A DNA stretch of 32,000 nucleotides, from NCBI RefSeq assembly GCF_000400465.1, contig NW_008806277.1, positions 300,001 to 332,000 on the forward strand, given 5' to 3'. The stretch comes from Wallemia ichthyophaga EXF-994 (taxonomy: Eukaryota; Fungi; Basidiomycota). Below, piece by piece: positions 1-30,433 of this stretch; position 1 is the stretch's first letter, and each line of letters opens with the position of its first letter. Made by a program: the position numbers and the translations under genes. Below the pieces are notes generated by a model that worked only from the letters and a program-made list of their open reading frames with translations, ran no database searches and was not told the origin of the DNA.

Positions 1-2933
1 TCGTAAAAAGCAAAAATCTACGAAGCCAACACAGTCAATACAGCCAACCCAACCAAATCAACCAATCAAATCAATCCAACCAAGGCTATTTGCTCCATTC
101 AGAGCTCTAGGATTCGTTACCAATGATATTCCCTTCAATATCCTATCTAGATCCACTAGAGACGCAAATAAATTATCTGCTCAGATTGTAACGTGCTTAG
201 GAAATAGCTGGGCTATGTGGGATCTTTCTACCATGCGCCTTCTCTTTGTTTCCCCAGATTGTGAAAATCCAATCAACTCTATTGCAAATGATGGTACATA
301 CGTTTATGTCTCTGCCGGTCCTCATTTGATCAAGTATAGTAGGGGTAAACAAATTTCTAAATTTGAATACCCTGAGCCTTCAGAACTGGGCACTATCACG
401 CTCTTCGGTAGTCAATTACTCGCACTCAGAGCTAATGGAAATGGTCTAATCGTTTTTGATAATCATTCAAATGCTAAATCAGAATTCTCACACGAGATTC
501 AATTCCCTTTCAATTTCACTGCCACTCAGATCCTCCATCCATCCACTTATCTCAATAAAATCGTTGTAGCATCTGCTCAAGGTGATTTACAGTTGTGGAA
601 TATAAGAACAAGATCACTCATTCACTCCTTCCAATCAACTCACCTTCGAAGAAGTCTTCCAAGGCCTTCTACAGAGGCTATTACTTCCCTCGAGCAATCT
701 CCTGCAATTGATGTTCTCGCCATTGGTTACTCTGACGGTCTAATTTCACTCTACGATATCAAATCTGATGAAGAACTCCTAAGAATGCGTATGGATGGCG
801 ATCTCTCCATCAATAGCATCACTTTCAGGACTGATGGTGAACATATCATGGCTACAGCCGCATCTAACGGTTACATAGCATTCTGGAATCTCAATGAAGG
901 TGGTAGATTAGTCAATGTGTTAAGAGACGCACACAGTGAATCTACATCCAAGATAGAGTTCCTACCAAATCAGCCAGTATTGATATCTTCCAGTGGCGAC
1001 AACAGCGTGAAAGTAGGTAACGTGCATATAATCCAACACAATTCTAACGACTATCCAAGCAATGGCTATTCGACTCGCCCAGCGTTCTCCCAAGACTGCT
1101 CAAGTTCAGAGCTGGTCATACTGCCCCACCACACCACATACGCTATTACGGTGAAGACGGAAAAACAATTCTCAGTGCTGGCAGAGATAACAGCTTGAGA
1201 TACATGAGTGTAGTAAGAGATTCGCGCAGTTTCGAAATGTCTCAGGGCTCACTCGCTAGAAAAGCTGCTCAACTCGCTCTACCAATGGCTGCGTTGAGGT
1301 TACCGCCCATTACATCACTCGCATTTGCGACGCAGAGATCTAAAGACTGGGATGACGTTCTTACCTCACATGCCGACAGTGCTGACTCCTACACTTGGCA
1401 TGTCCAAGATAAGAAACTTGGTAAGCACAAGCTGGTGATGGATGACGGCGTCGCTCGATCAGTCACTGTATCCGTGTGCGGTAATTACGGTCTCATCGGT
1501 ACAGATAAAGGTAAGATTAATCAATTCAATATGCAGTCGGGCATCAAGAGACGTGTACTGTCTATACAGAACAAGTACGAGAATAAAGATGCACTGGCTA
1601 TTTCAGGTGTCATCAGTGACGCTCTCAACACTACCATCGTCGCTAGTACATTGGATGGATTCCTCTATTTCTTCGATTTCCACAACGGCGCTCTCATCGA
1701 TACGCTGCAACTGCGTGGTGGTGTACACCAGTTGATTCTGCAGCGAGACAACGGAATAATGGCCGCCATATGCGCCGACAATGTCGTACGATTAGTAGAT
1801 ATCGAAACAAGACGTGTCGTTCGTGAATTTAGAGGATTCACAAAGAGGGTGTCTGACATCGTAAGTATGAGTTTGCATAATAGCTTATCTAACAAGACAC
1901 ACAAAGGCATTCTCCCCAGACTCTAAATGGCTCGTTGCATCATCGTATGACTGTATTATACGGACATACGATATTCCAACGGGGACGTTGGTTGATGCAT
2001 TCCGAGTGACCAGTCTGCCCACCTCCCTCACCTTCTCTCCTACAGGAGATTTCGTAGCGACGACGCACACTGATTCCGTCGGTATCTATCTATGGGCGAA
2101 CAAGACACAGCTGGTGGAGGTTCCACTGCGACCCATCTCCCAAACTGATGTCATCGACGTTGGACTCCCAACTATGCAAGGCGAAGTTGAGGATGAGGAG
2201 CTTGGTCAGTTGGAGAGTGAACCTATTGTGCAACATGCGCTCGGCGGTATCAAAGACCAATTAAGTGATGGATTGGTTACGCTGTCGACTATGCCTCGCA
2301 CTCGCTGGCAAACGTTGCTCAATTTAGATACAATTAGAGAGCGTAATAAACCAGCTGAACCAGTCAAGGCTCCTGAACAAGCACCTTTCTTCCTTCCGTC
2401 GCTTATGGATACGCAGAACAACACTTCTGGCGATAAGATGAGTATGGATGTGGATAAACAGGATACTCATCGCCTGGTTGAAGGTGCTCTCGGTATTGAG
2501 ACCCAGCTGTCGAAAATGTTACACTCCGCTCAATCTGATAAATGTGAGTTTAAATCGCGCCTTGTCGTTGATTCAGAATTTGATGACTAACCTAATCTAA
2601 CTTATCGCAGTGGATCAACTCTTCACCTACTTGCATGGAATAACACCCGCCAACAATGACGCAGATGTTAGATCATTGATGCCTGCAGATCTCGAACTCT
2701 TCTTGAAAGCATTGAGCGAGAGACTTGGTCAGCAGAAAGATTTCGATACTGTACAAGCACAGATGGGATTAGCTTTGAGAGTTCACGCGGATATCTTGTC
2801 ATCTGACAGCTCACTCAGAGAAAGTCTATCAAACTTAGCTCAGGCTCAGCGCAAAGAGTGTCACAGATTGTTCGATCTGACTAATTACTCACTTGGTGTG
2901 CTCAGCTTCGTTAGAGACATCCCACTGCAGTAG
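1..2933 (+). CDS. UTP21: U3 snoRNA-associated WD40 protein Utp21/WDR36 (5' end outside window); exons <1-1012, 1060-1860, 1907-2543, 2611-2933
   Basis: Frame is open from nt 2 (RKKQK...RLFAPFRALGFVTNDIPF, typical Utp21 N-terminus). WD40 repeats follow, then the C-terminal Utp21 motif TLSTMPRTRWQTLLNLDTIRERNKPAEPVKAPEQAPFFLPS. Three GT-AG introns (47, 46, 67 nt) join the ORF fragments in frame. Confidence 0.95.
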
Positions 2934-18824: not shown

Positions 18825-19052
18825 GTATAAATTTAGTCTGCATTCCAAGTTTAGTGGGGTTTTGAATGAAAATATTCAAATATTCAAAACATTCCAAATT
18901 GGCAGAGGAATGAATGGGGAGAGATACACAAACATATGAGATACACGAAATTATACAGATAAAGATACGCGCAGGTATACAGATTGGTATGAATGAAATA
19001 TAATGTGCAAACACGCTCACACTCCCCTTACACCGCAACTAATAACGTCAGA

Positions 19053-19533
19053 ATGTCACTCGTGGTTTTGAGAGCAGGCAGAGGATTTAGAGTGGGAGAA
19101 TCGCAGAGAGTTGAATTTATGCCAGATAAGGGACAGATAGAGGTGGATGTACAAGACGGTTTAGCTAGATTCTGTAGGTGGTGGTGTATTAAATGATATA
19201 AAGGGCTAGACTGACGCGATATACCAAGGCTGGAGAACACGCGCTACTGCGAGCTTAGAAGAGGAGCTGATGCTTTTCCCGCACGACAGCAAACTCGAGC
19301 GTGTCCACGAGGAGCCAACAGGAAGAACATTCAAGCTGACGTTTGAATCGAGCCAGGCGGTGCATTTCTTCTACCTCCAGAGTGAGCGCAGTGATGTGTA
19401 CAAGGATAAGCTGGTAGACACGGTGAACGCCATCATCAATGACCCAGAAAACGCTGCTAGTCTCCCAAAGCTGCCGACGGAAGCGTCAATCAGGGAGAAC
19501 AGCGCACAGCCCCAATCCATGGAGACCGATTGA
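19053..19533 (+). CDS. RPN13: Proteasome ubiquitin receptor Rpn13/ADRM1, Pru domain only (141 aa); intron 19174-19228
   Basis: MSLVVLRAGRGFR...PDKGQI...DGLARF|CWRTR...LMLFPHD...TGRTFKLTFESSQAVHFFYLQ matches the Pru-domain pattern (KAG..., PDxRKG, IHFCW, LIIFP, GRVFVLKF, RLFFWMQ). Confidence 0.85.
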
Positions 19534-19582
19534 ATTGTAAAGGAAATGAATTTGAATTGATTGTTCGCTTGTAGCCTCCATC

Positions 19583-20466
19583 ATGTCGCTCATACGCTCT
19601 GGACAAACGCTCGACGAGTTCCTGTCCAGCTTCTGGACAAGCCACCTCCGCGAAATCGAGAACGAAGACAGCGATTTCAAGAAGCACGACTTGCCGCTGG
19701 CGAGGATAAAGAAGGTGATGAAGTCTGATCCCTGTGAGTTGAGTGGTTTGCTGTTGAAAGTATTTAAACCATTTGAAAGCGGTGAAAGTGAGTTTGTTTG
19801 GTTGGCGTGGATAAGCTGATCCGTTGTGCTGCCAGATGATTTCTGGTGAAGGTGGGGGATGTCGTCCGTGTATTGAGCACACTCTAACGCCCAATCAGCT
19901 CCAATACTCTTCTCCAAGGCTTGTGAGAGTGCGTCGATCAATCTCATCGGCCTTGCTCACTCACGCACCCGCAGTCTTCATCTCAGAGCTCACTTGCAGA
20001 GCGTGGCTTGTCGCCGAATCAAACAAGCGCAGAACTCTCCAGAGATCTGACGTCGCTGGCGCCGTTGAGCTCTCTGATCAGTTCGATTTCCTTATCGACA
20101 TACTACCACGCGGCGAAGAGGCCAACAAGAGGAGTAAAAGTAAGGCTGCAGAGGCGGATGTGGAGCGGGAGCACGAAGAGCAAGAGCAGGAGCAGGATCA
20201 GGAGCAAGAGCGAGACCAAGAACAGGAATATGAGCAAAATCAGCCGCAACACCAGGAACACAATCAAAATGACGTCACTTTGAGCGTGAGTTATCATCTA
20301 TACATGCAAATAAATACTCAGACACAGCATTATATTACACTAACTTCAGTACTCGGACCATTCCAATGATCCAGCTCCTTCTGGCTACTTGCAATACGAT
20401 ACTGATTTCCTACTCGACATGATAGGCAGCTCACCCAACAACGCCCAGCAAACAGAGCAGAGATGA
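19583..20466 (+). CDS. HAP5: CCAAT-binding factor subunit C (Hap5/NF-YC, histone fold); exons 19583-19733, 19780-19787, 19836-19851, 19899-19928, 19975-20285, 20350-20466
   Basis: Spliced product gives [78 protein letters not shown], the canonical NF-YC core. The last exon is less certain. Confidence 0.92.
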
Positions 20467-20509
20467 GTTTGCTTCGCCATTTGCCATCTACTACCTGCCG
20501 CCTGTACAA

Positions 20510-22017
20510 CTAATGTATCTCACGCTCCAAACTCTCGAAATCCTCTTTGTGTATCTCTGCAGCCGACACCCTAACAGCGCTGCGAGGGGGGTTGGTTAGC
20601 CATCTGAGAGTGATACAATCGCTGCGCCACTCACCCTGCCAAGCTACCGCCGACCCAAGCATAGCAAGCCGGATTCCAAGCGGGAGCTTTGTTTGCTTTG
20701 CCACCTTTGCCACCTTTGCCTGCTTTGCCAGTTGGCTGGCTACCACGCGGCATCGGGTCGTTGATGACCTCGAACGACGTACTCAGACTGCTGAGATCAT
20801 TGAGATGAGTGGCTGTGCGTGTTGTGCGTTGCAACAGAGCGCGTGTCTCATCGCCAAGTCGCCGCCTGAAGCCGACTATGGACGCTGTACCCCCGACGAC
20901 TAGACAGCTCGCGCTCAGCTCTCTTCGCAGATCAATCGGTAGCGCTTGCATGCACTTCACCACGCACTCAGGTATGCTTGGCTCGTCTATGTCGCCACGA
21001 CTCTCAAGCAACTCCTCTACCGCCCTCGCTCTCACCCAGCCCGGTATAAATACCACTCCGCGCCCGTGGCTTGTTTGGATCTTGACTGCTATCTGATTAG
21101 CGTTTTTGTTATCATTATCATTAGCATTAGATGGTTTATCCGTCTCGCTATCAATTCCACTTTCATTTTCAGTTCCCGACTCAGCCAAGAGTGCCCGACA
21201 CTTAACATCCTCAATCCAGGCATCAGTGACTGCCTCGTGCGGCACATTGCCTGGTGGGGGCTGGCCGGCAGCGTTAGAGAGCTGGTTGGTGGAAAGGGCA
21301 GGGTAGTAAACACCATGAGCGAGCACGAGGTTACGCAAGTGGTTCGTTAGCCGCTTTCCCGCGAGTGGGGAAGAGACAGTGAGGGGTAGCATAGGTCTAG
21401 CCGCGTACACAGCCGACACGACAGTCTGCAGATAGCCCACATCCACGACCAGACCTGTCGTCCTCCCCGCCGCCATAAGCGCCGCGAGTGTGGCTGGTGT
21501 GAATGACACGGCTGTTACTTGCATGCTAGTGAAGAGTGCACCCATTATAGCCCGCCGCACTGGTGTGCTGAGCAAGTCATTCTCGAGTATTATAACCCGA
21601 CGTTGCTTGGGATCGACTTGAAGGTGGGTGTAGTAGATTTCGCGGAAGGCGTCGAGAAGCCCTAGCTCATTCTGCACCCCATTCAAATCCCAAAGCCCTC
21701 CTTCCACCTCTACCGTTATACTCTCGCGCGGACTGGCTTCCCCGCTGAAACCAACCTTTATCACCCTCGAGCCTGGGTCAATCACTATCTTTGATTCCGT
21801 CCCGTAGACTGAATGGCGGGTTGACTTGTTGCGTATATCCCCCGTCAGCGCGTACTTGGCTGTGGCTTTCACTCACGGTGAGATACGCGGGACTGTGCCC
21901 CATCGGCGTCGCTGGCTGCTTCAATGAAATTGGCGTAGAGAACCCGAACGGCAGCCCTGCACCACTGCCAGTCGATCTGTGTTTCACCGGCGTCAACGGC
22001 GGTCTGGGAGTGCTCAT
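20510..22017 (-). CDS. ARP10: Actin-related protein, Arp10/ACTR10 (dynactin)-like; 2 introns
   Basis: IVIDPGSRVIKVGFSGEASPR, TGLVVDVGYLQTVV, LPIDLRRELSASCLVVGGTASIVGFRRRL, AWVGGSLAG: a divergent actin fold with the basidiomycete Arp10-type N-terminal extension. Exact C-terminus uncertain. Confidence 0.78.
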
Positions 22018-23862: not shown

Positions 23863-26800
23863 TCATTTATTCACAGTTTGATTTATGAAACCATAAAGCG
23901 CATTCCCCTGATCTACTCCCAATATATCCCTCATATCTTTGTTTGTCATGTCCACCAAATGACGTATTGAGTTTACTTTGTTGGGTATATATTGGTAATT
24001 CTTCCCTGAAACTCCAGGCATGCTCTTCATCACTTCCACTGGCGTCATTGTCCAATTCTCTTCAATCAGATCCTCCAGTCCCGCTTCATCCGTACCCACA
24101 CCGCTCGCTTTCTCCACATCCGGCTCTTCCCTCTGTACCTTAAGATCGCTAAATATCTCTGCTGTCTGTCTCGGCGACGACGACCATATGATCCGAAGCC
24201 GAGGAAACGATATCGTCAGCATTACTAGTCTTGATTGGAATATCTCTGTGGGTGATGTACCCGTTATACGCGTCTTTTGAGCTGCAGCGGGGTGTAAATT
24301 CTTTTTAGATTCCGCTATTGTCTGTATTTATCGTCAGTCACGTGTCTGCCCGCACACCTCATTCCCTACCTCTAGTGAGAACGACCGGTTTTCCTCAAAT
24401 TCGATCAGTAGTATAGGTGTCTTATAGTATGTGCTCATGTATTCACACTGTGTGAACAGTCTACCCGATTGGAATGACTGGTTCAGATCTGTTAAACTCT
24501 TGCGCTCGACTACCATCGTAGGATCCAAGACATAGTCTCCAACTGTAAGCGTTGTAGGCTGCACGTCAAAGTTAGCTGAATGAAGTATACCTGGCAGCGA
24601 TGATCTGAACTCTCGAACATCAACCACTACCTGTGTGTGTGTAAGCAGTGGAAAGCTGGTGCATTATCTCTCGCCGCGCGCTTACTATTGGCTGCTTATC
24701 GCCGACTACTTGCTGGCCACCCGCTACACGCGCCGACAGAGCACTCAAGTAGTGGTCAGTCCCTGCCCGCGTCGACTCCTTCTCAAACAGAGGCAGGAGC
24801 ATTGTCTGCAGTTGAAAAATTTAGTTATCGAAAACCCACTCATTCCAAAACCCACAGATTTCTCGCGGATCAGTCTCTCAAAAGCATCCTTTTCTTTACG
24901 CAACCCAGATAAATACCTCTGCTCCTCCACCGACGCATTGTACAGCAAGAAGTACAGTCTAATGTCGATGTGAGGGTTGGATGATTTGTAAACCTAAACC
25001 AAGTAAGCTAAATTACCCCACTATACCCCTTCAACTCACCTCAACTCTCCTAACGAATGCCGGATCAGGATCATACATAACGATGAACTTTGGTTTGATT
25101 TCATCCAGGAGCGCATCGTCATCATCACCTCTATAAGCCCTGATGAGCAAAGTATCCTCCTCCTCCATCAATCCGTACTCGTCATTATCATCATGCGGCC
25201 ATATTTCATTAACATCTGTTGTAAGAAGCCATTGAGGGAGGTTATCGAAAAAATCGTAATCTTCATCGTCATCCTCGTCTGAGAGCTCTATCACTTCCTT
25301 ATCTTTGCCAGACCTCTGAGATTGACTGTGAGAATGTGTTAGATGAAGATAACGCTGAGAAATGCCAATTCACCTACAACTGTGCAATTTGCTTTGCTTC
25401 TGCTTCAAGCGGCGATTCAGCATTCGCGTCTAAATTGTTGTGTGTCTTGCGCGATGACGCGACGGATGCCATAACAGATCCTCCACGCACGCGTCGTCTG
25501 TTGTGACCATACGCGGTAGCTCCTTCATTTCTCCTAAATTGCTCCTTCCTCTGCAAGGCGGCAGAAGTGGCCTGAGAATTGCCTTGCTCAACTGCATTCT
25601 TGTCGCTAGACGATGAATTTTTGGACGGACTGCCAGCATTTGTGTTAGCAACATTGCTCTGCGCATTAAACTTCATATTGGTTGACATTATTCCCACATT
25701 TGCCTTGAATTTCTCGAGGTGATCTCTCAGCAACCTCTTCATCATCTTAGGTGCCTTTTTCTTTAAATGTGTTGAATGTGTTTTGCTATTATCATCTTCG
25801 CATTGACTGAGGTACTCTGTTAGCTGTATGACTGTCCTATTAGTCCCGCACATGATCAGAGTCATGTTATTCTCGCTCTGCGTTAGACCCTTGTTAAATT
25901 GTATGTTGTTGTCTATCTCTGCCAGTATCTCTGTCAACACTCCCCATTTCGGCTGTTCTTCTAGGACCGGAACTATGTTGGGCGGCAGCCACGACGCTCC
26001 ACCTCCACGACCGTTCTCGACCACTTTGTATGTCCGCTCTTTAGCTACACTGAAGATAGCATCGGCTGGGTCGAGATACAGCCAATGTGACGGAGTTTTG
26101 TTACCTGTACTCGAACTCTTATATTCATTCAGGTTGGATTGATAGATAGATTCGAGCAATTCTTCAAACTCGACACACGAATAGTTGAGCAGGAATGAGA
26201 GAAGATTGCGCAGTGTGCTAAGATCTTCAATCAGTCGCTTAGTTTTTGGTTTGATGAGGTGCCAGACGGGCAGTAGCTGCATCTTTATAATCTTGTCAAA
26301 ACTCCTGAACAGGGCGTTATCAACGGTGAAGTCATCAATATCGAGATTTGCGACATTGCCCTTCTTGATTTCCTGTATTGTAGCATCCATACACTGCAGG
26401 ATAGAGTGCTGTAAGTTGAGCATAGACTTTGTCAGCGATGGGTATAGTTCTACGACGTCAGCCTTGCGTTTGTCGAGATCTTCCTGGATAGTTTCGTGGA
26501 AACGCGGCCATATCCAGACCTTCCTGAGACCCAAAGAACGTAAAACAGTCTGCAGTGGCGAGACGCCGCTAGCAAAGAGCTCAGGGTTGTCTGAGAATGC
26601 CTTAAGAAAGCCCTCCTGGAAGTTGCAGGTGAGATAAGGAGTTTTTCACAGTGAAACCGCTCACCTTGTTATACTTGCGGTAAATTCTAGTAATGAAGGT
26701 CTCGAGCGAGGTTGGTGTGACTCTGGGAGGGTTGAGTGATAGTTCCACACAGTCCAGCATAATACCCACTGTTCTGCGTGTAAAATCACCATACCAGAAA

Positions 26801-27215
26801 TAAGATGTACGGGTATGGTTCCATTGAGCATGTCGACGACGAGGATTCGCGAGGTGACAGACACTAAGCCACCCTCCTTATACAACTCCTCCCTCTGCTT
26901 ACTGATCATATCAAAATTGACAACTCTGAGGCCTGGTTTGGCCACGCCCATCGTGCCGAGTAGATCGCCAATGCCGTCTTCCTCTGGTGAATCTGCGTTA
27001 AGCAAGAGAACCAATCTGCGTGGATCAGATTGGAGAGTGAGGAACGAGCACACGACACGCCTCAGTCCCAAGCCTCTAGCGAGGATCAACAGACCAGATT
27101 CGCAGGGATCGAGGTCCTGGGTGGAAGTGTCTGATGGATCTGGTGTTGCCGTGTCTGGTGTTCCTGGAATTAGCTGCCGCAGAATCTCCCGGTGAAATCT
27201 CAATGGGAGTTCCAT
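23863..27215 (-). CDS. RAD1: Structure-specific endonuclease XPF/ERCC4 (Rad1/Rad16); multi-exon
   Basis: N-terminal helicase-like module ([43 protein letters not shown]), [18 protein letters not shown], nuclease domain [11 protein letters not shown]...VGDYVL...[15 protein letters not shown], and C-terminal HhH2 (MKSMPGVS...). Start set at [12 protein letters not shown] (27213-27215). Confidence 0.95.
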
Positions 27216-27281
27216 CAATGATGACGTAACGAGACCAAGTCCAGTGGCGATAAGAAATTTATTTTTTGCGCGCACGCCACC

Positions 27282-28153
27282 ATGCCACCAAAATTCCCAA
27301 ATAAATCTGTGCACTATCTGCGGCTGAATGGGAATGCTGTGATGCAGTGTATCGTTTACTTGGACAATAAGCACCTCGAATGGTTCAGCCGCAGAATCCT
27401 CGAGTGCGTCATACGCGATATCCGGAAGCTGTACATGCCCAAGCTGTTGGCAGAGTTGCAAAGTGGCAAGGCTGAGCTAGACACGTACAGGAACCAGGGC
27501 TATCAATTTGCCTACTACTTCAAACCCACGCGCGACAAGCAGGGCGTTGTGAGCAAGGCCCACCAAATGACGTACATTCCTTCGTCTAAGCGTACAGTGC
27601 GACAGAAGCCTGAGCCAAGGCGTAATCAATCTGGTGAGACTGCAGAAGAGCTATTTGTCGATGACGACGGTGACGACTATGACGACGCTCAATTCGAAGA
27701 GAAACCAAAACCCAAGGTCAACACAAGCTACAAAATGAACAAACTCTTCTCAAAGACACTTTGCGTGAGTGAAGTGGCTAGCAATACAGCGCACAATATC
27801 TGACACGCGCTATCCAGATTATCATAGAACCATTCCCTTCGCTGGAAGAGTCGCATGTGGAGGGGACGATGCATCCACCCATTATGCCATCGCCATCGTC
27901 TCCTCCGCAGGGTGATATGCCAGGCGACACACATATACCAGACTCACTCGCAGATCCAGAAGATATCAAACCAGACATCAACACAATCAGCAACAGCAGT
28001 CCTCAACTCCCCTCTTCTACTCAGGCACTTTTCAACGACTTCAACTTGAACAATCCTGGCAGCTCCCTCTCCTTTTCGCAGATGGTCCAGAATGACCATT
28101 TCGGCGATAGGGTTGCTGAAATTGATGAGGAGAATGATGTAATGTATGAGTGA
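27282..28153 (+). CDS. Conserved-looking 272-aa protein, putative Saw1/SLX4IP-family XPF partner; exons 27282-27764, 27818-28153
   Basis: Two ORF pieces joined in frame by a 53-nt GTGAGT...CTGAC...CCAG intron, with good start context (GCCACCATG). The gene model is solid; the family call rests on recalled motif similarity (see findings). Confidence 0.75.
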
Positions 28154-28158
28154 TTCTA

Positions 28159-30433
28159 CTACTTCAGGCTTTGTCTCGACGAAGACTTGGCCAGCAGCTT
28201 CTCATGTCTCCGGCTAGTCTGGTTGAGGTCTTTGAGGAGCGCGTCGTGCCTCTTCTTGAGACTGTCCATACGCCAATTGAGTGTTTTTGGAGGGGGTGAC
28301 TTGATGGCGTTTTCTGGATGCGCTTTGTTCCCATCAGCTCTCTCAATCTTCTCTATATTCTCACTCTTCTCCATCTCCGGCAGATCGCCCAGCGCGCTGA
28401 ACCTGGACGATGATTTGGTCAACCTCGACGAGCTGGCCCTGCTAGAGAGGGTATGAGTTGGGCGAGAGGGAGCGTCTTTGAGTGTGTTGAGAGTATTCTG
28501 TGTAGAGTGTGTACCAGTAGAGCGGATATTAGGCGAGGATTTGTACTGTTTACTGAGCAACGGGCTGGCATTGGTAGTGGCGGTGGTAGTTGTTGTAGTG
28601 GTAGTAGTAGCACCACCATTAGCACTTACACCGCCCGCACTCAACCTAGACAAACTAATTTGCGAGTTCATCCTCCCCAGACTGGACCTACTCTCGACTC
28701 TCTTGAGCGGCGATTCGCGGTAGCCACCCGCATCAGCCTGGGTGTTGTCATCCACTGACGAAAGATCGCTGCTGTACGACACAGTGCGCGGTATACCTTC
28801 CACCATGTCTACCTTCTCCACATTCTCCACGCCCGCCAAATCGACTGTCCAGTCCAGTCGCTTTTTCGCTGAGAGTCCGACACATTGCTGCATCTCCAAG
28901 AAAGCCTGCTCTTCAGAAACATTCCGACTACGCGGGTTGGTTGATGTGTGGATGTTGTGGAAAGACAGTTTGAATGGTGTCTCTGGGGCGTGTAGGGGGG
29001 TGTCTCCCATACTTGCAAATGTGTTAGCATTTGCTTTGTTACTAGTGTGTGTGTCGCTGCTGCTGTGAGGGAATAAATTTTCAACTGTTGGTATATAATC
29101 AAAGTCCATCCATTCGTTAGATGGCGTGAATGTGAAAGGGCTGCTTGAACTCTTGTCGCGCGTGTCGTCCACACTCGCACTCCAACTCCCACTGACAGAG
29201 TTAGCAGCCTGGAAGAGAGCGCTGAAGTCGAAAGCGTTCTGAGGAGTCTTTTGGTGGTGGTCTTGGGGCGGCGTATTATTCCCCTCGCTTTCGCTCCCCT
29301 CCACCAGCTCATTTAGAGTGTGATCGTAGTATGTCGAGGGCACGGCGCGTTGCTCAACGCCATTCCAGTCGACGCCACGGAAAAAGACATGGTGCTTAAC
29401 CTGCTCCGTGCCACTATACCCCAATCGTTCCGTCTGTGGTTTGAATAGGCCCACGAGCAATGCGCGGAGATCGTCGTCTGAGCGACAGTGAATTTGGTCA
29501 TCACCCAGCGCATACTGATGCATCTTGATGCGGTTGTACGTCTCCCCGACGCTCTCTGCGAAAAAAGGTGTAATTCCGAATGCGAGTTCGTAGAGCACAA
29601 CGCCGAAGCTCCACCAGTCGCTCTCTGGGCCGTATAAACCTGGGGAATTATCGCTGTCTTTCTCCTTGTCCTTCTCGTTATCATTCACGTTATCATTCTC
29701 ATTCGCCTGCTCAGCTACCAGGTATTCTTCCGCTGCGAGAAGTATCTCTGGCGAGACATAGTCGGGCGTACCCACCAAGCCGACGCTGTCAATTTTGCGT
29801 GCGCGCTGCACACCAGCGTAATCGAGGAGCGCGGTAGCCGCTCCAAAGTCAGTAAGGAGAAGGTGATCGTCAGAGGCGATGAGCATGTTTTGCGGCTTGA
29901 GGTCGCGGTGCAGCCAGTGCACGTCATCATGTAGCCATTGTAGGGCGGCGAGAAGCTGAGCGCCGTAGTTGCGTATGGTCTGGGCAGGCAGCGTCTTCTC
30001 GTCTTGCATTTCGAGCAGCTCGAGGAGAGTGCCGTTGCTGGCGAGTGGGAGTTGCAGTAAGAGGTCCGTATCCGTTTGGAACGCAGAGATCATCGGCATA
30101 CAATGGCTGCTTTTGTGTGTCAACGCTAGCAGATGCACGCTGCGCTCGTTGTGTGGATTGCTGTACTGCAAGTATGCGTGAATAGCAGCGTTAATGAGAG
30201 AAATACTAACGCACACTAATATGTCTCCTGCTAAAACCTTTATTCATCACCTTCAACGCGTAAAATGACCCATTCAGTCGGCATTTGGCTAGCTGAATTG
30301 TGCCGAACTGCCCTTTGCTGATCAACTTGAGCGTCTTGAAATCTGTGCTGTTTATATGCAATTGATTATATTTTACATCATTTCCCTTAATATTTCTTAG
30401 CTCCTTGCGACGTTTCAACCATTCTTCCATCAT
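28159..30433 (-). CDS. AGC-group Ser/Thr kinase, DMPK/MRCK/ROCK-like catalytic domain with a long disordered tail; one 49-nt intron
   Basis: DFKTLKLISKGQFG, YALKVM, HRDLKPQN, LTDFG, VGTPDYVSPEIL, YGPESDWWSFGV, TPFFAESVGETYNRI, HVFFRGVDW. Confidence 0.88.

Follow-up and report, generated by a model that had tools for sequence, protein, structure and literature searches.

We conclude, with some reservation, that the gene at positions 27282-28153, on the plus strand of a 32,000-nucleotide stretch of the genome of Wallemia ichthyophaga EXF-994 (hereafter the window, in whose positions all coordinates are given), probably encodes a remote SLX4IP/Saw1-type accessory subunit of XPF-ERCC1, and that it is the Wallemia member of a fungus-wide family. 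We favor this reading because of i) the spread of the family through the fungi; ii) the match of its predicted fold to SLX4IP; iii) sequence signals linking the family to SLX4IP and Saw1; iv) an architecture like that of SLX4IP, a compact domain followed by a disordered tail; and v) the location of the gene next to XPF. It is likewise probable that the family is ancient and distantly homologous to two accessory subunits, human SLX4IP and yeast Saw1, which attach to XPF/Rad1 at its helicase-like module.

Splicing of the window DNA (27282-27764 joined to 27818-28153) yields a 272-residue protein which matches a GenBank protein (P0001), and whose N-terminus lines up with those of other family members. 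GenBank has the same gene model for Wallemia ichthyophaga, a halophilic basidiomycete, under the name hypothetical protein E3P81_02278 / E3P98_02153; the gene, which a sequence-only reading of the window had called unannotated, is therefore modeled there but without a functional name. (The reported identity of the cluster representative is 100% across the full query, yet one residue differs in the alignment, VEG[A/T]MHPP, A versus T.) The four blocks on which that reading was built are all present in the spliced protein and in the order given: VHYLRLNGNAVMQCIVYLD at residues 10-28, LEWFSRRILECVIRDIR at 32-48, YRNQGYQFAYYFKP at 69-82, and EEKPKPKVNTSYKMNKLFSKTLCIIIEP at 139-166, crossing the splice junction, with the acidic linker at 118-140; so is an IKPD motif at residues 211-214 (27965-27976). 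In a 109-sequence family alignment no columns are better conserved than those of these blocks, which also coincide with confidently predicted strands and helix, and for both reasons we take them to be more than chance resemblances.

The fold carries most of the argument. Given the 109-sequence alignment, AlphaFold2 (AF2) assigned residues 1-100 and 141-170 a predicted local distance difference test score (pLDDT) of 92-97; an alignment of only 4 sequences yielded an unusable model, its mean pLDDT being 41.6. In the usable model the sheet begun by residues 1-100 (signature YLR...VxxxxVYLD..H..WF and R.GYQFAYYF) is completed by a hairpin of strands b6 (145-155) and b7 (158-165) with a final IIIEP, so that residues 1-100 and 141-170 are predicted to make up one beta-grasp of the SLX4IP/MAJIN type, seven strands around one long helix. 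A Foldseek search of 350,542 PDB chains gave just three matches with a probability of at least 0.98, the next best being at 0.14: chain 9qed_C, which is SLX4IP in the cryo-electron microscopy structure of XPF-ERCC1-SLX4-SLX4IP (probability 0.99, template modeling score (TM) 0.62 normalized to the 121 modeled SLX4IP residues), and the two MAJIN chains of 6GNY (6gny_A, probability 0.99, TM 0.59; 6gny_C, TM 0.52). The Foldseek comparison proposed by the sequence-only reading thus retrieved SLX4IP, with MAJIN alone scoring similarly, and a control search of viral structures found nothing above probability 0.23. No Rad1-Rad10-Saw1 entry was among the matches in the PDB library (to April 2026), nor was Saw1 found among PDB sequences with an unverified Saw1 sequence as query.

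Sequence comparisons point the same way. The curated Pfam thresholds are 20.5 bits for Saw1 (PF11561) and 27 bits for SLX4IP (PF15744), and human SLX4IP residues 1-178, the positive control, scored 354.6 bits on the latter. The family consensus reached 20.2 bits on Saw1 (E 4.7e-4, profile positions 186-246), 0.3 bit under threshold, over an acidic run and KPKPxLxxxYxGF...VVVVE; in the window protein this is the EEKPKP...CIIIEP block, which had been likened to Saw1 and does align with the C-terminal part of the Saw1 model (186-246 for the full consensus, 210-246 without the linker). The elements of this hairpin block (acidic run, K-P, aromatic Y, hydrophobic last strand) are colinear with Saw1 profile positions of about 210-247, and a genuine Saw1 C-terminal fragment maps to positions 221-247. 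Among the 25 of 31 Pfam families listed at E≤0.1, moreover, Saw1 alone was matched by multiple members of the alignment (3 of 109, best E 0.042); ten further single members searched on Pfam, including both from Taphrinomycotina, gave no Saw1 or SLX4IP match.

When a linker-free profile of 40 family sequences was aligned by hhalign with SLX4IP residues 1-122, the score of 26.3 (P 5.2e-4) was reached by none of 400 shuffles (mean 11.4, maximum 21.8); earlier profiles had given P 0.016 and 0.0028. Every hhalign run paired WFSE with WMSD, and likewise GYGFQITAYFLK with GDxYQFAYFFR, in an unchanging alignment, which bears out the correspondences drawn in the sequence-only reading (WFSR with SWFSE, GYQFAYYFK with GYGFQITAYFLK), and at low stringency the alignment was colinear over the whole domain (family 2-125, SLX4IP 3-120). 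Two controls stayed at background: ubiquitin (7 of 150 shuffles) and MAJIN (82 of 150), the latter compared over its verified residues 1-52. The N-terminus of Saw1, taken from a sequence that is not a verified database entry but reaches 175 bits against Pfam Saw1, gave an hhalign score that none of 150 shuffles reached, convincing in the b1-b2 hairpin part only. The reference strings quoted in the sequence-only reading proved genuine, those of SLX4IP in chain 9qed_C and those of Saw1 at PF11561 profile positions 1-29 and 221-247. Searches of the PDB with phmmer and hmmsearch found just acidic-linker noise, ribosomal bS21, and MSH2, and neither SLX4IP nor Saw1; a confident match to an unrelated family, which would have argued for another identity, was nowhere found.

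When 1.84 billion representatives were searched without a word index, a profile built from 4 Wallemia-type sequences retrieved 126 proteins at E≤1e-3, of which 55 reached E≤1e-10; word-indexed searches returned mostly Wallemia relatives, the third of them, which used the family profile, adding Umbelopsis and Geosiphon. Taxonomy and names were looked up for 30 of the relatives, and not one of these bears a functional name, all being "hypothetical", "uncharacterized", or "unnamed". They come from Agaricomycotina (Crucibulum, Trametopsis, Amanita, Cryptococcus, Cutaneotrichosporon), Pucciniomycotina (Puccinia, Cronartium, Melampsora, Sporobolomyces, Mixia), Ustilaginomycotina (Pseudozyma, Malassezia, Sympodiomycopsis), Mucoromycota (Umbelopsis, Calcarisporiella, Jimgerdemannia), Glomeromycota (Geosiphon, Funneliformis, Paraglomus, Ambispora), Chytridiomycota (Powellomyces, Gaertneriomyces, Rhizophlyctis, Cladochytrium, Phlyctochytrium), and Taphrinomycotina (Neolecta, Protomyces); none of the 30 is from Saccharomycotina, Pezizomycotina, or animals. 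Family members share an N-terminal signature, R-N-x-x-Y-L-R-I-S ... V-L-P-L-x-L-Y-L-D-x-x-H-x-x-W-M ... D-V-x-R-G-x-x-Y-Q-F-A-Y-F-F-R ... H-x-V-L-x-K, followed after a variable linker by K-P-x-L-x-x-x-Y-x-G-F ... L-C-V-V-V-E-P. Columns conserved in at least 90% of the 109 sequences are Y12, L13, R14, W34, Q75, K92, and L160, and the conserved residues of the hairpin block are K143, P144, Y150, and L160. Length varies from short forms of about 175 residues in early-diverging fungi to about 400 residues, with long charged linkers, in many Agaricomycotina.

Outside the predicted domain, the linker of the Wallemia protein consists of a basic patch (residues 98-117, 6 K/R) and then an acidic one (118-140, 12 D/E), and the tail, with 2 K/R against 19 D/E, ends in an acidic C-terminus; AF2 predicts short helices in the tail at residues 227-234 and 248-251. 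There is no transmembrane segment, the highest 19-residue Kyte-Doolittle mean being 0.77 and lying in strand b7. Two tail motifs recur in the family and are conserved across basidiomycetes: ALFND (28025-28039) is an instance of (P/A)LFx[DE], present in 66 of 109 sequences, and FSQMVQ (28073-28090) of FSQ(V/M)(L/V)(N/Q), typically FSQVLN, whose columns are kept in about 55-60 of 109 sequences, the S column in 62 and the Q column in 57. Both are candidate partner-docking motifs. The IKPD motif, which had been proposed as a SUMO-type site, is present, but it is not conserved outside Wallemia: its lysine column holds T in 47 sequences and K in 4, lysine being confined to Wallemia, and most members have T-P.

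The neighboring gene is XPF, as the sequence-only reading had supposed: it matches human XPF (E 5e-36 and 6e-16) and the Pfam ERCC4 domain (E 4e-20). In Wallemia mellicola, whose XPF orthologue has 965 residues, the two genes form the same head-to-head pair across a gap of 133 bp. That a protein most similar in structure to an XPF subunit should be encoded next to XPF is unlikely to be a coincidence, with the caveat that the gene first drew notice owing to its XPF neighbor.

Several observations nevertheless weigh against our interpretation. In Umbelopsis, Geosiphon, Pseudozyma, Trametopsis, Cronartium, and Protomyces the gene does not adjoin XPF; present in W. mellicola and missing from these six genomes, the adjacency is a feature of Wallemia rather than conserved synteny. 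The Foldseek E-values are modest, 0.03-0.07, in part because the query holds more than 140 disordered residues, and MAJIN is as good a match as SLX4IP. The window protein itself matches no Pfam family at E≤10; PF15744 is matched neither by it nor by the consensus at E≤10, and the 25 of 31 families that were listed at E≤0.1 in the search with the 109 members do not include it; the Saw1 score of the consensus drops to 11.9-13.5 bits (profile positions 210-246) once the acidic linker is removed; and with an earlier, noisier profile 2 of 120 shuffles reached the SLX4IP score. An hmmsearch of all PDB sequences with the family profiles did not list SLX4IP at E≤10, its top match being instead a segment of human MSH2 (E 0.042), and sequence alone would therefore not have identified SLX4IP. 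According to the passage in PMC4159138 that cites Li et al. 2013, Arg19 in strand b2 of Saw1 is needed for Rad1 binding; the equivalent in the window protein is Ile24 in the hhalign register, on which this assignment depends. The two long beta-hairpin arms with which Saw1 wraps Rad1 are absent from the AF2 model, which has the seven core strands, and so is the basic DNA-binding stretch at the C-terminus of Saw1, the tail here being acidic and the basic patch internal. Membership in the SLX4IP/Saw1 family, as originally proposed, is supported at the level of an SLX4IP-type fold but not by Pfam, since the window protein passes neither Saw1 nor UPF0492; the sequence evidence, weak but consistent, backs the structural result and does not stand alone.

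Could the protein be an adaptor of the SLX4IP/MAJIN beta-grasp type whose partner is something other than XPF, the adjacency in Wallemia being coincidental? MAJIN, an animal meiosis-specific protein of the meiotic telomere complex whose partner is TERB2 rather than XPF, fits the model no less well than SLX4IP, the adjacency is not kept in the six other fungi, and Arg19 is not conserved. Function can also drift within such a family, as when Saw1 of Schizosaccharomyces pombe binds Rad16-Swi10 without a single-strand annealing phenotype (PMC4159138). Sequence, however, links the family to SLX4IP and Saw1 but gives no signal to MAJIN, the family consensus comes close to matching Pfam Saw1, and the protein lacks a transmembrane anchor; moreover, a gene would directly adjoin XPF by chance in about 2 cases in what we take to be about 4900 genes. 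On balance we regard a different partner as unlikely.

More improbable, in our judgment, is an unrelated origin, the protein being specific to fungi, with an alpha+beta fold merely analogous to that of SLX4IP and weak sequence matches arising by chance. Beta-grasp-like folds are common, the Foldseek E-values exceed 0.01, all curated-model thresholds were missed, and SLX4IP is absent from the PDB hmmsearch lists; but analogy would have to account for three independent weak signals that are colinear with the fold (SLX4IP by hhalign, the N-terminal hairpin of Saw1, and the C-terminal hairpin of the Saw1 Pfam model), for the retrieval from 350,542 PDB chains of the SLX4IP/MAJIN subgroup alone and not of generic beta-grasp proteins, and for a ubiquitin control that stayed at background. 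Finally, the helix and beta-meander (about residues 38-109 of the linker-free core) might be related to the clamp-domain region of MutS/MSH2 and serve as a DNA-binding module, an idea to which we give very little credence. Human MSH2 481-552 (LREIMNDLEKKM...) was the top PDB sequence match of both family profiles (E 1.2 and 0.042), and hhalign to this segment scored 36.7 (P 1.5e-6, none of 150 shuffles); the segment was picked post hoc, however, the match lacks significance by its database-level E-value, the 50 Foldseek matches listed do not include MSH2, and only part of the domain is covered, with b1-b2 and b7 left out. Yeast Msh2 is also not known to share the string QFGYYFR. The MSH2 similarity could reflect chance, convergence of a helix and beta-meander, or a distant relation.

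If the protein is indeed an accessory subunit of XPF-ERCC1, its beta-grasp domain would bind the product of the neighboring gene on the helicase-like module, probably by an edge-strand contact (beta-strand addition) as in 9QED, while the linker and tail motifs (PLF..D/E, FSQVLN) might recruit DNA or partners such as Slx4, SUMO, or recombination proteins. XPF-ERCC1 could thereby be sent to crosslink repair or, for the removal of 3′ tails in single-strand annealing, to recombination intermediates, and not to nucleotide excision repair. A bolder scenario, which we hold to be a serious possibility though short of probable, is that a single XPF-docking beta-grasp subunit was present in the opisthokont ancestor; that the family described here connects yeast Saw1 with vertebrate SLX4IP as their direct orthologue lineage, kept in nearly all fungal phyla but unrecognized among "hypothetical" proteins; that it was remodeled into Saw1 in Saccharomycotina by the addition of arms, with Arg19-like intermediates in Taphrinomycotina; and that its lineage-specific tail motifs represent new interactions of XPF-ERCC1 with partners.

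We wish to emphasize which part of this is new. The common fold of Saw1 and SLX4IP and their shared Rad1/XPF surface were reported only in 2025-2026, the common topology and shared surface being published in 2026 (PMC13578500), and the suggestion in the sequence-only reading that the gene bridges Saw1 and SLX4IP has accordingly lost much of its novelty. The relationship between the two is already published; the divergent fungal family is the new part. The Saw1 studies found in the literature concern budding and fission yeast only, and our literature search found no description of SLX4IP/Saw1 relatives in Basidiomycota, Mucoromycota, Glomeromycota, Chytridiomycota, or Taphrinomycotina. If our reading is correct, a beta-grasp subunit dedicated to targeting has accompanied XPF/Rad1 from an early stage of fungal evolution, perhaps even from before the split between fungi and animals; more than 100 unnamed or "hypothetical" proteins would gain a function; Saw1 and SLX4IP could be aligned through intermediate sequences; and the conserved tail motifs would become candidate docking sites for further repair partners.

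The locus is very compact. The 66-bp gap between the two divergent start codons, presumed to be a shared promoter, is matched at the other end by only 5 bp between the stop codon (28153) and the stop of a convergent protein-kinase open reading frame (28159-30216, minus strand), and with such gaps the flanking transcripts must overlap or have very short untranslated regions. The gaps at the same two places in W. mellicola are 133 bp and 15 bp. Within the 66-bp gap lie TGACGTAA (ATF/CRE-like, 27222-27229) and a GCGCGCACGC stretch (27268-27278); the former is not above chance, since at least one copy occurred in 58 of 100 shuffles, and is loosely conserved in W. mellicola, where a CGCG core lies just upstream of the ATG. 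Judging from the gene order in W. mellicola, the minus-strand genes downstream of XPF are expected to include one for actin and a Glyco_transf_15 gene. Scans of the window revealed neither tRNAs nor relevant tandem repeats, and its G+C content is 0.49-0.55 at positions 19000-22000 compared with about 0.41-0.47 elsewhere. In another Wallemia-like species (Logan assembly, P0004) the gene call reads through two introns, one common to both species and one, between YRN and GYQF, with no counterpart in W. ichthyophaga (27486-27500); intron positions therefore vary within Wallemia.

Table 1. Coordinates of the gene, its predicted protein segments, and the XPF side of the locus in the window (b, beta-strand; HhH, helix-hairpin-helix)
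Feature	Position	Strand	Content or basis
XPF/Rad1 gene, multi-exon	23863..27215	-	helicase-like module, ERCC4 nuclease, C-terminal HhH region
Gap between divergent ATGs, 66 bp	27216..27281	.	XPF ATG at 27215 (-), gene ATG at 27282
Exon 1	27282..27764	+	codons 1-161: ATG, predicted beta-grasp core b1-b5, basic/acidic linker, strand b6
Predicted beta-grasp core, residues 1-100	27282..27581	+	AF2 pLDDT 92-97; conservation; hhalign to SLX4IP
Predicted core elements: b1 8-14, b2 19-27, long helix 37-61, b3 67-71, b4 74-82, b5 89-97		+	AF2
Predicted disordered linker, residues 98-140	27573..27701	+	pLDDT 56-66; composition
Predicted hairpin, residues 141-170 (split by intron)	27702..27844	+	pLDDT 92-96; KPKPKV..Y
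Intron, 53 nt	27765..27817	+	GTGAGT, CTGAC branch site, CAG; in-frame stops inside
Exon 2	27818..28153	+	codons 162-272 and TGA: end of b7 (IIIEP), disordered tail
Predicted disordered tail, acidic and S/P-rich, residues 171-272	27845..28150	+	pLDDT mostly <50

Among known systems, the N-terminal domain of MAJIN (6GNY) belongs to the same beta-grasp subgroup as the window protein, which unlike MAJIN has no C-terminal membrane anchor and shows no sequence signal to it. Human SLX4IP (C20orf94; UPF0492/PF15744; 9QED/9QEE chain C) has been described as vertebrate-specific (PMC8599992); its residues 1-122 form a beta-grasp resembling MAJIN and bind XPF through beta-strand addition (PMC12804970), SLX4IP and MAJIN being called structural homologues and Saw1 sharing both the topology of SLX4IP and the same Rad1/XPF surface (PMC12804970, PMC13578500). 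By AF2 and DSSP count, the window protein and SLX4IP have the same order of elements (b1-b2, a long helix, and five further strands), and both consist of an N-terminal beta-grasp (about 120 residues in SLX4IP) and then a long disordered tail, with SWFSE/EWFSR and GYGFQITAYFLK/GYQFAYYFK as common motifs. They differ in the connection between b5 and b6, about 4 residues in SLX4IP but a disordered basic/acidic insertion in the fungal proteins (about 45 residues here, more than 100 in many Agaricomycotina), and in their tail motifs.

Saw1 is an accessory subunit of Rad1/XPF in fungi, with a core of SLX4IP topology (PMC13578500); it was considered in its budding-yeast (YAL027W; PF11561) and S. pombe (SPBC409.16c) forms. 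Its N-terminal hairpin VKIARDMVLPLRIFVN resembles LRISxxxVLPLxLYLD of the family, and its C-terminal EEDIKPVIEFMYKP...IIDVHV resembles EEKPKPxLxxxYxGF...LCVVVEP. The column equivalent to Arg19 holds Y 50 times and I 24 times, and R only in Neolecta irregularis (P0096, VLEVRIYLD) and Protomyces lactucae-debilis (P0100, ALELRIYVA), to be compared with VLPLRIFVN in Saw1; these residues hint that the Neolecta and Protomyces members may be intermediate between the fungal family and Saw1. In overall architecture, a compact domain with a disordered tail, the protein is nearer to SLX4IP than to Saw1.

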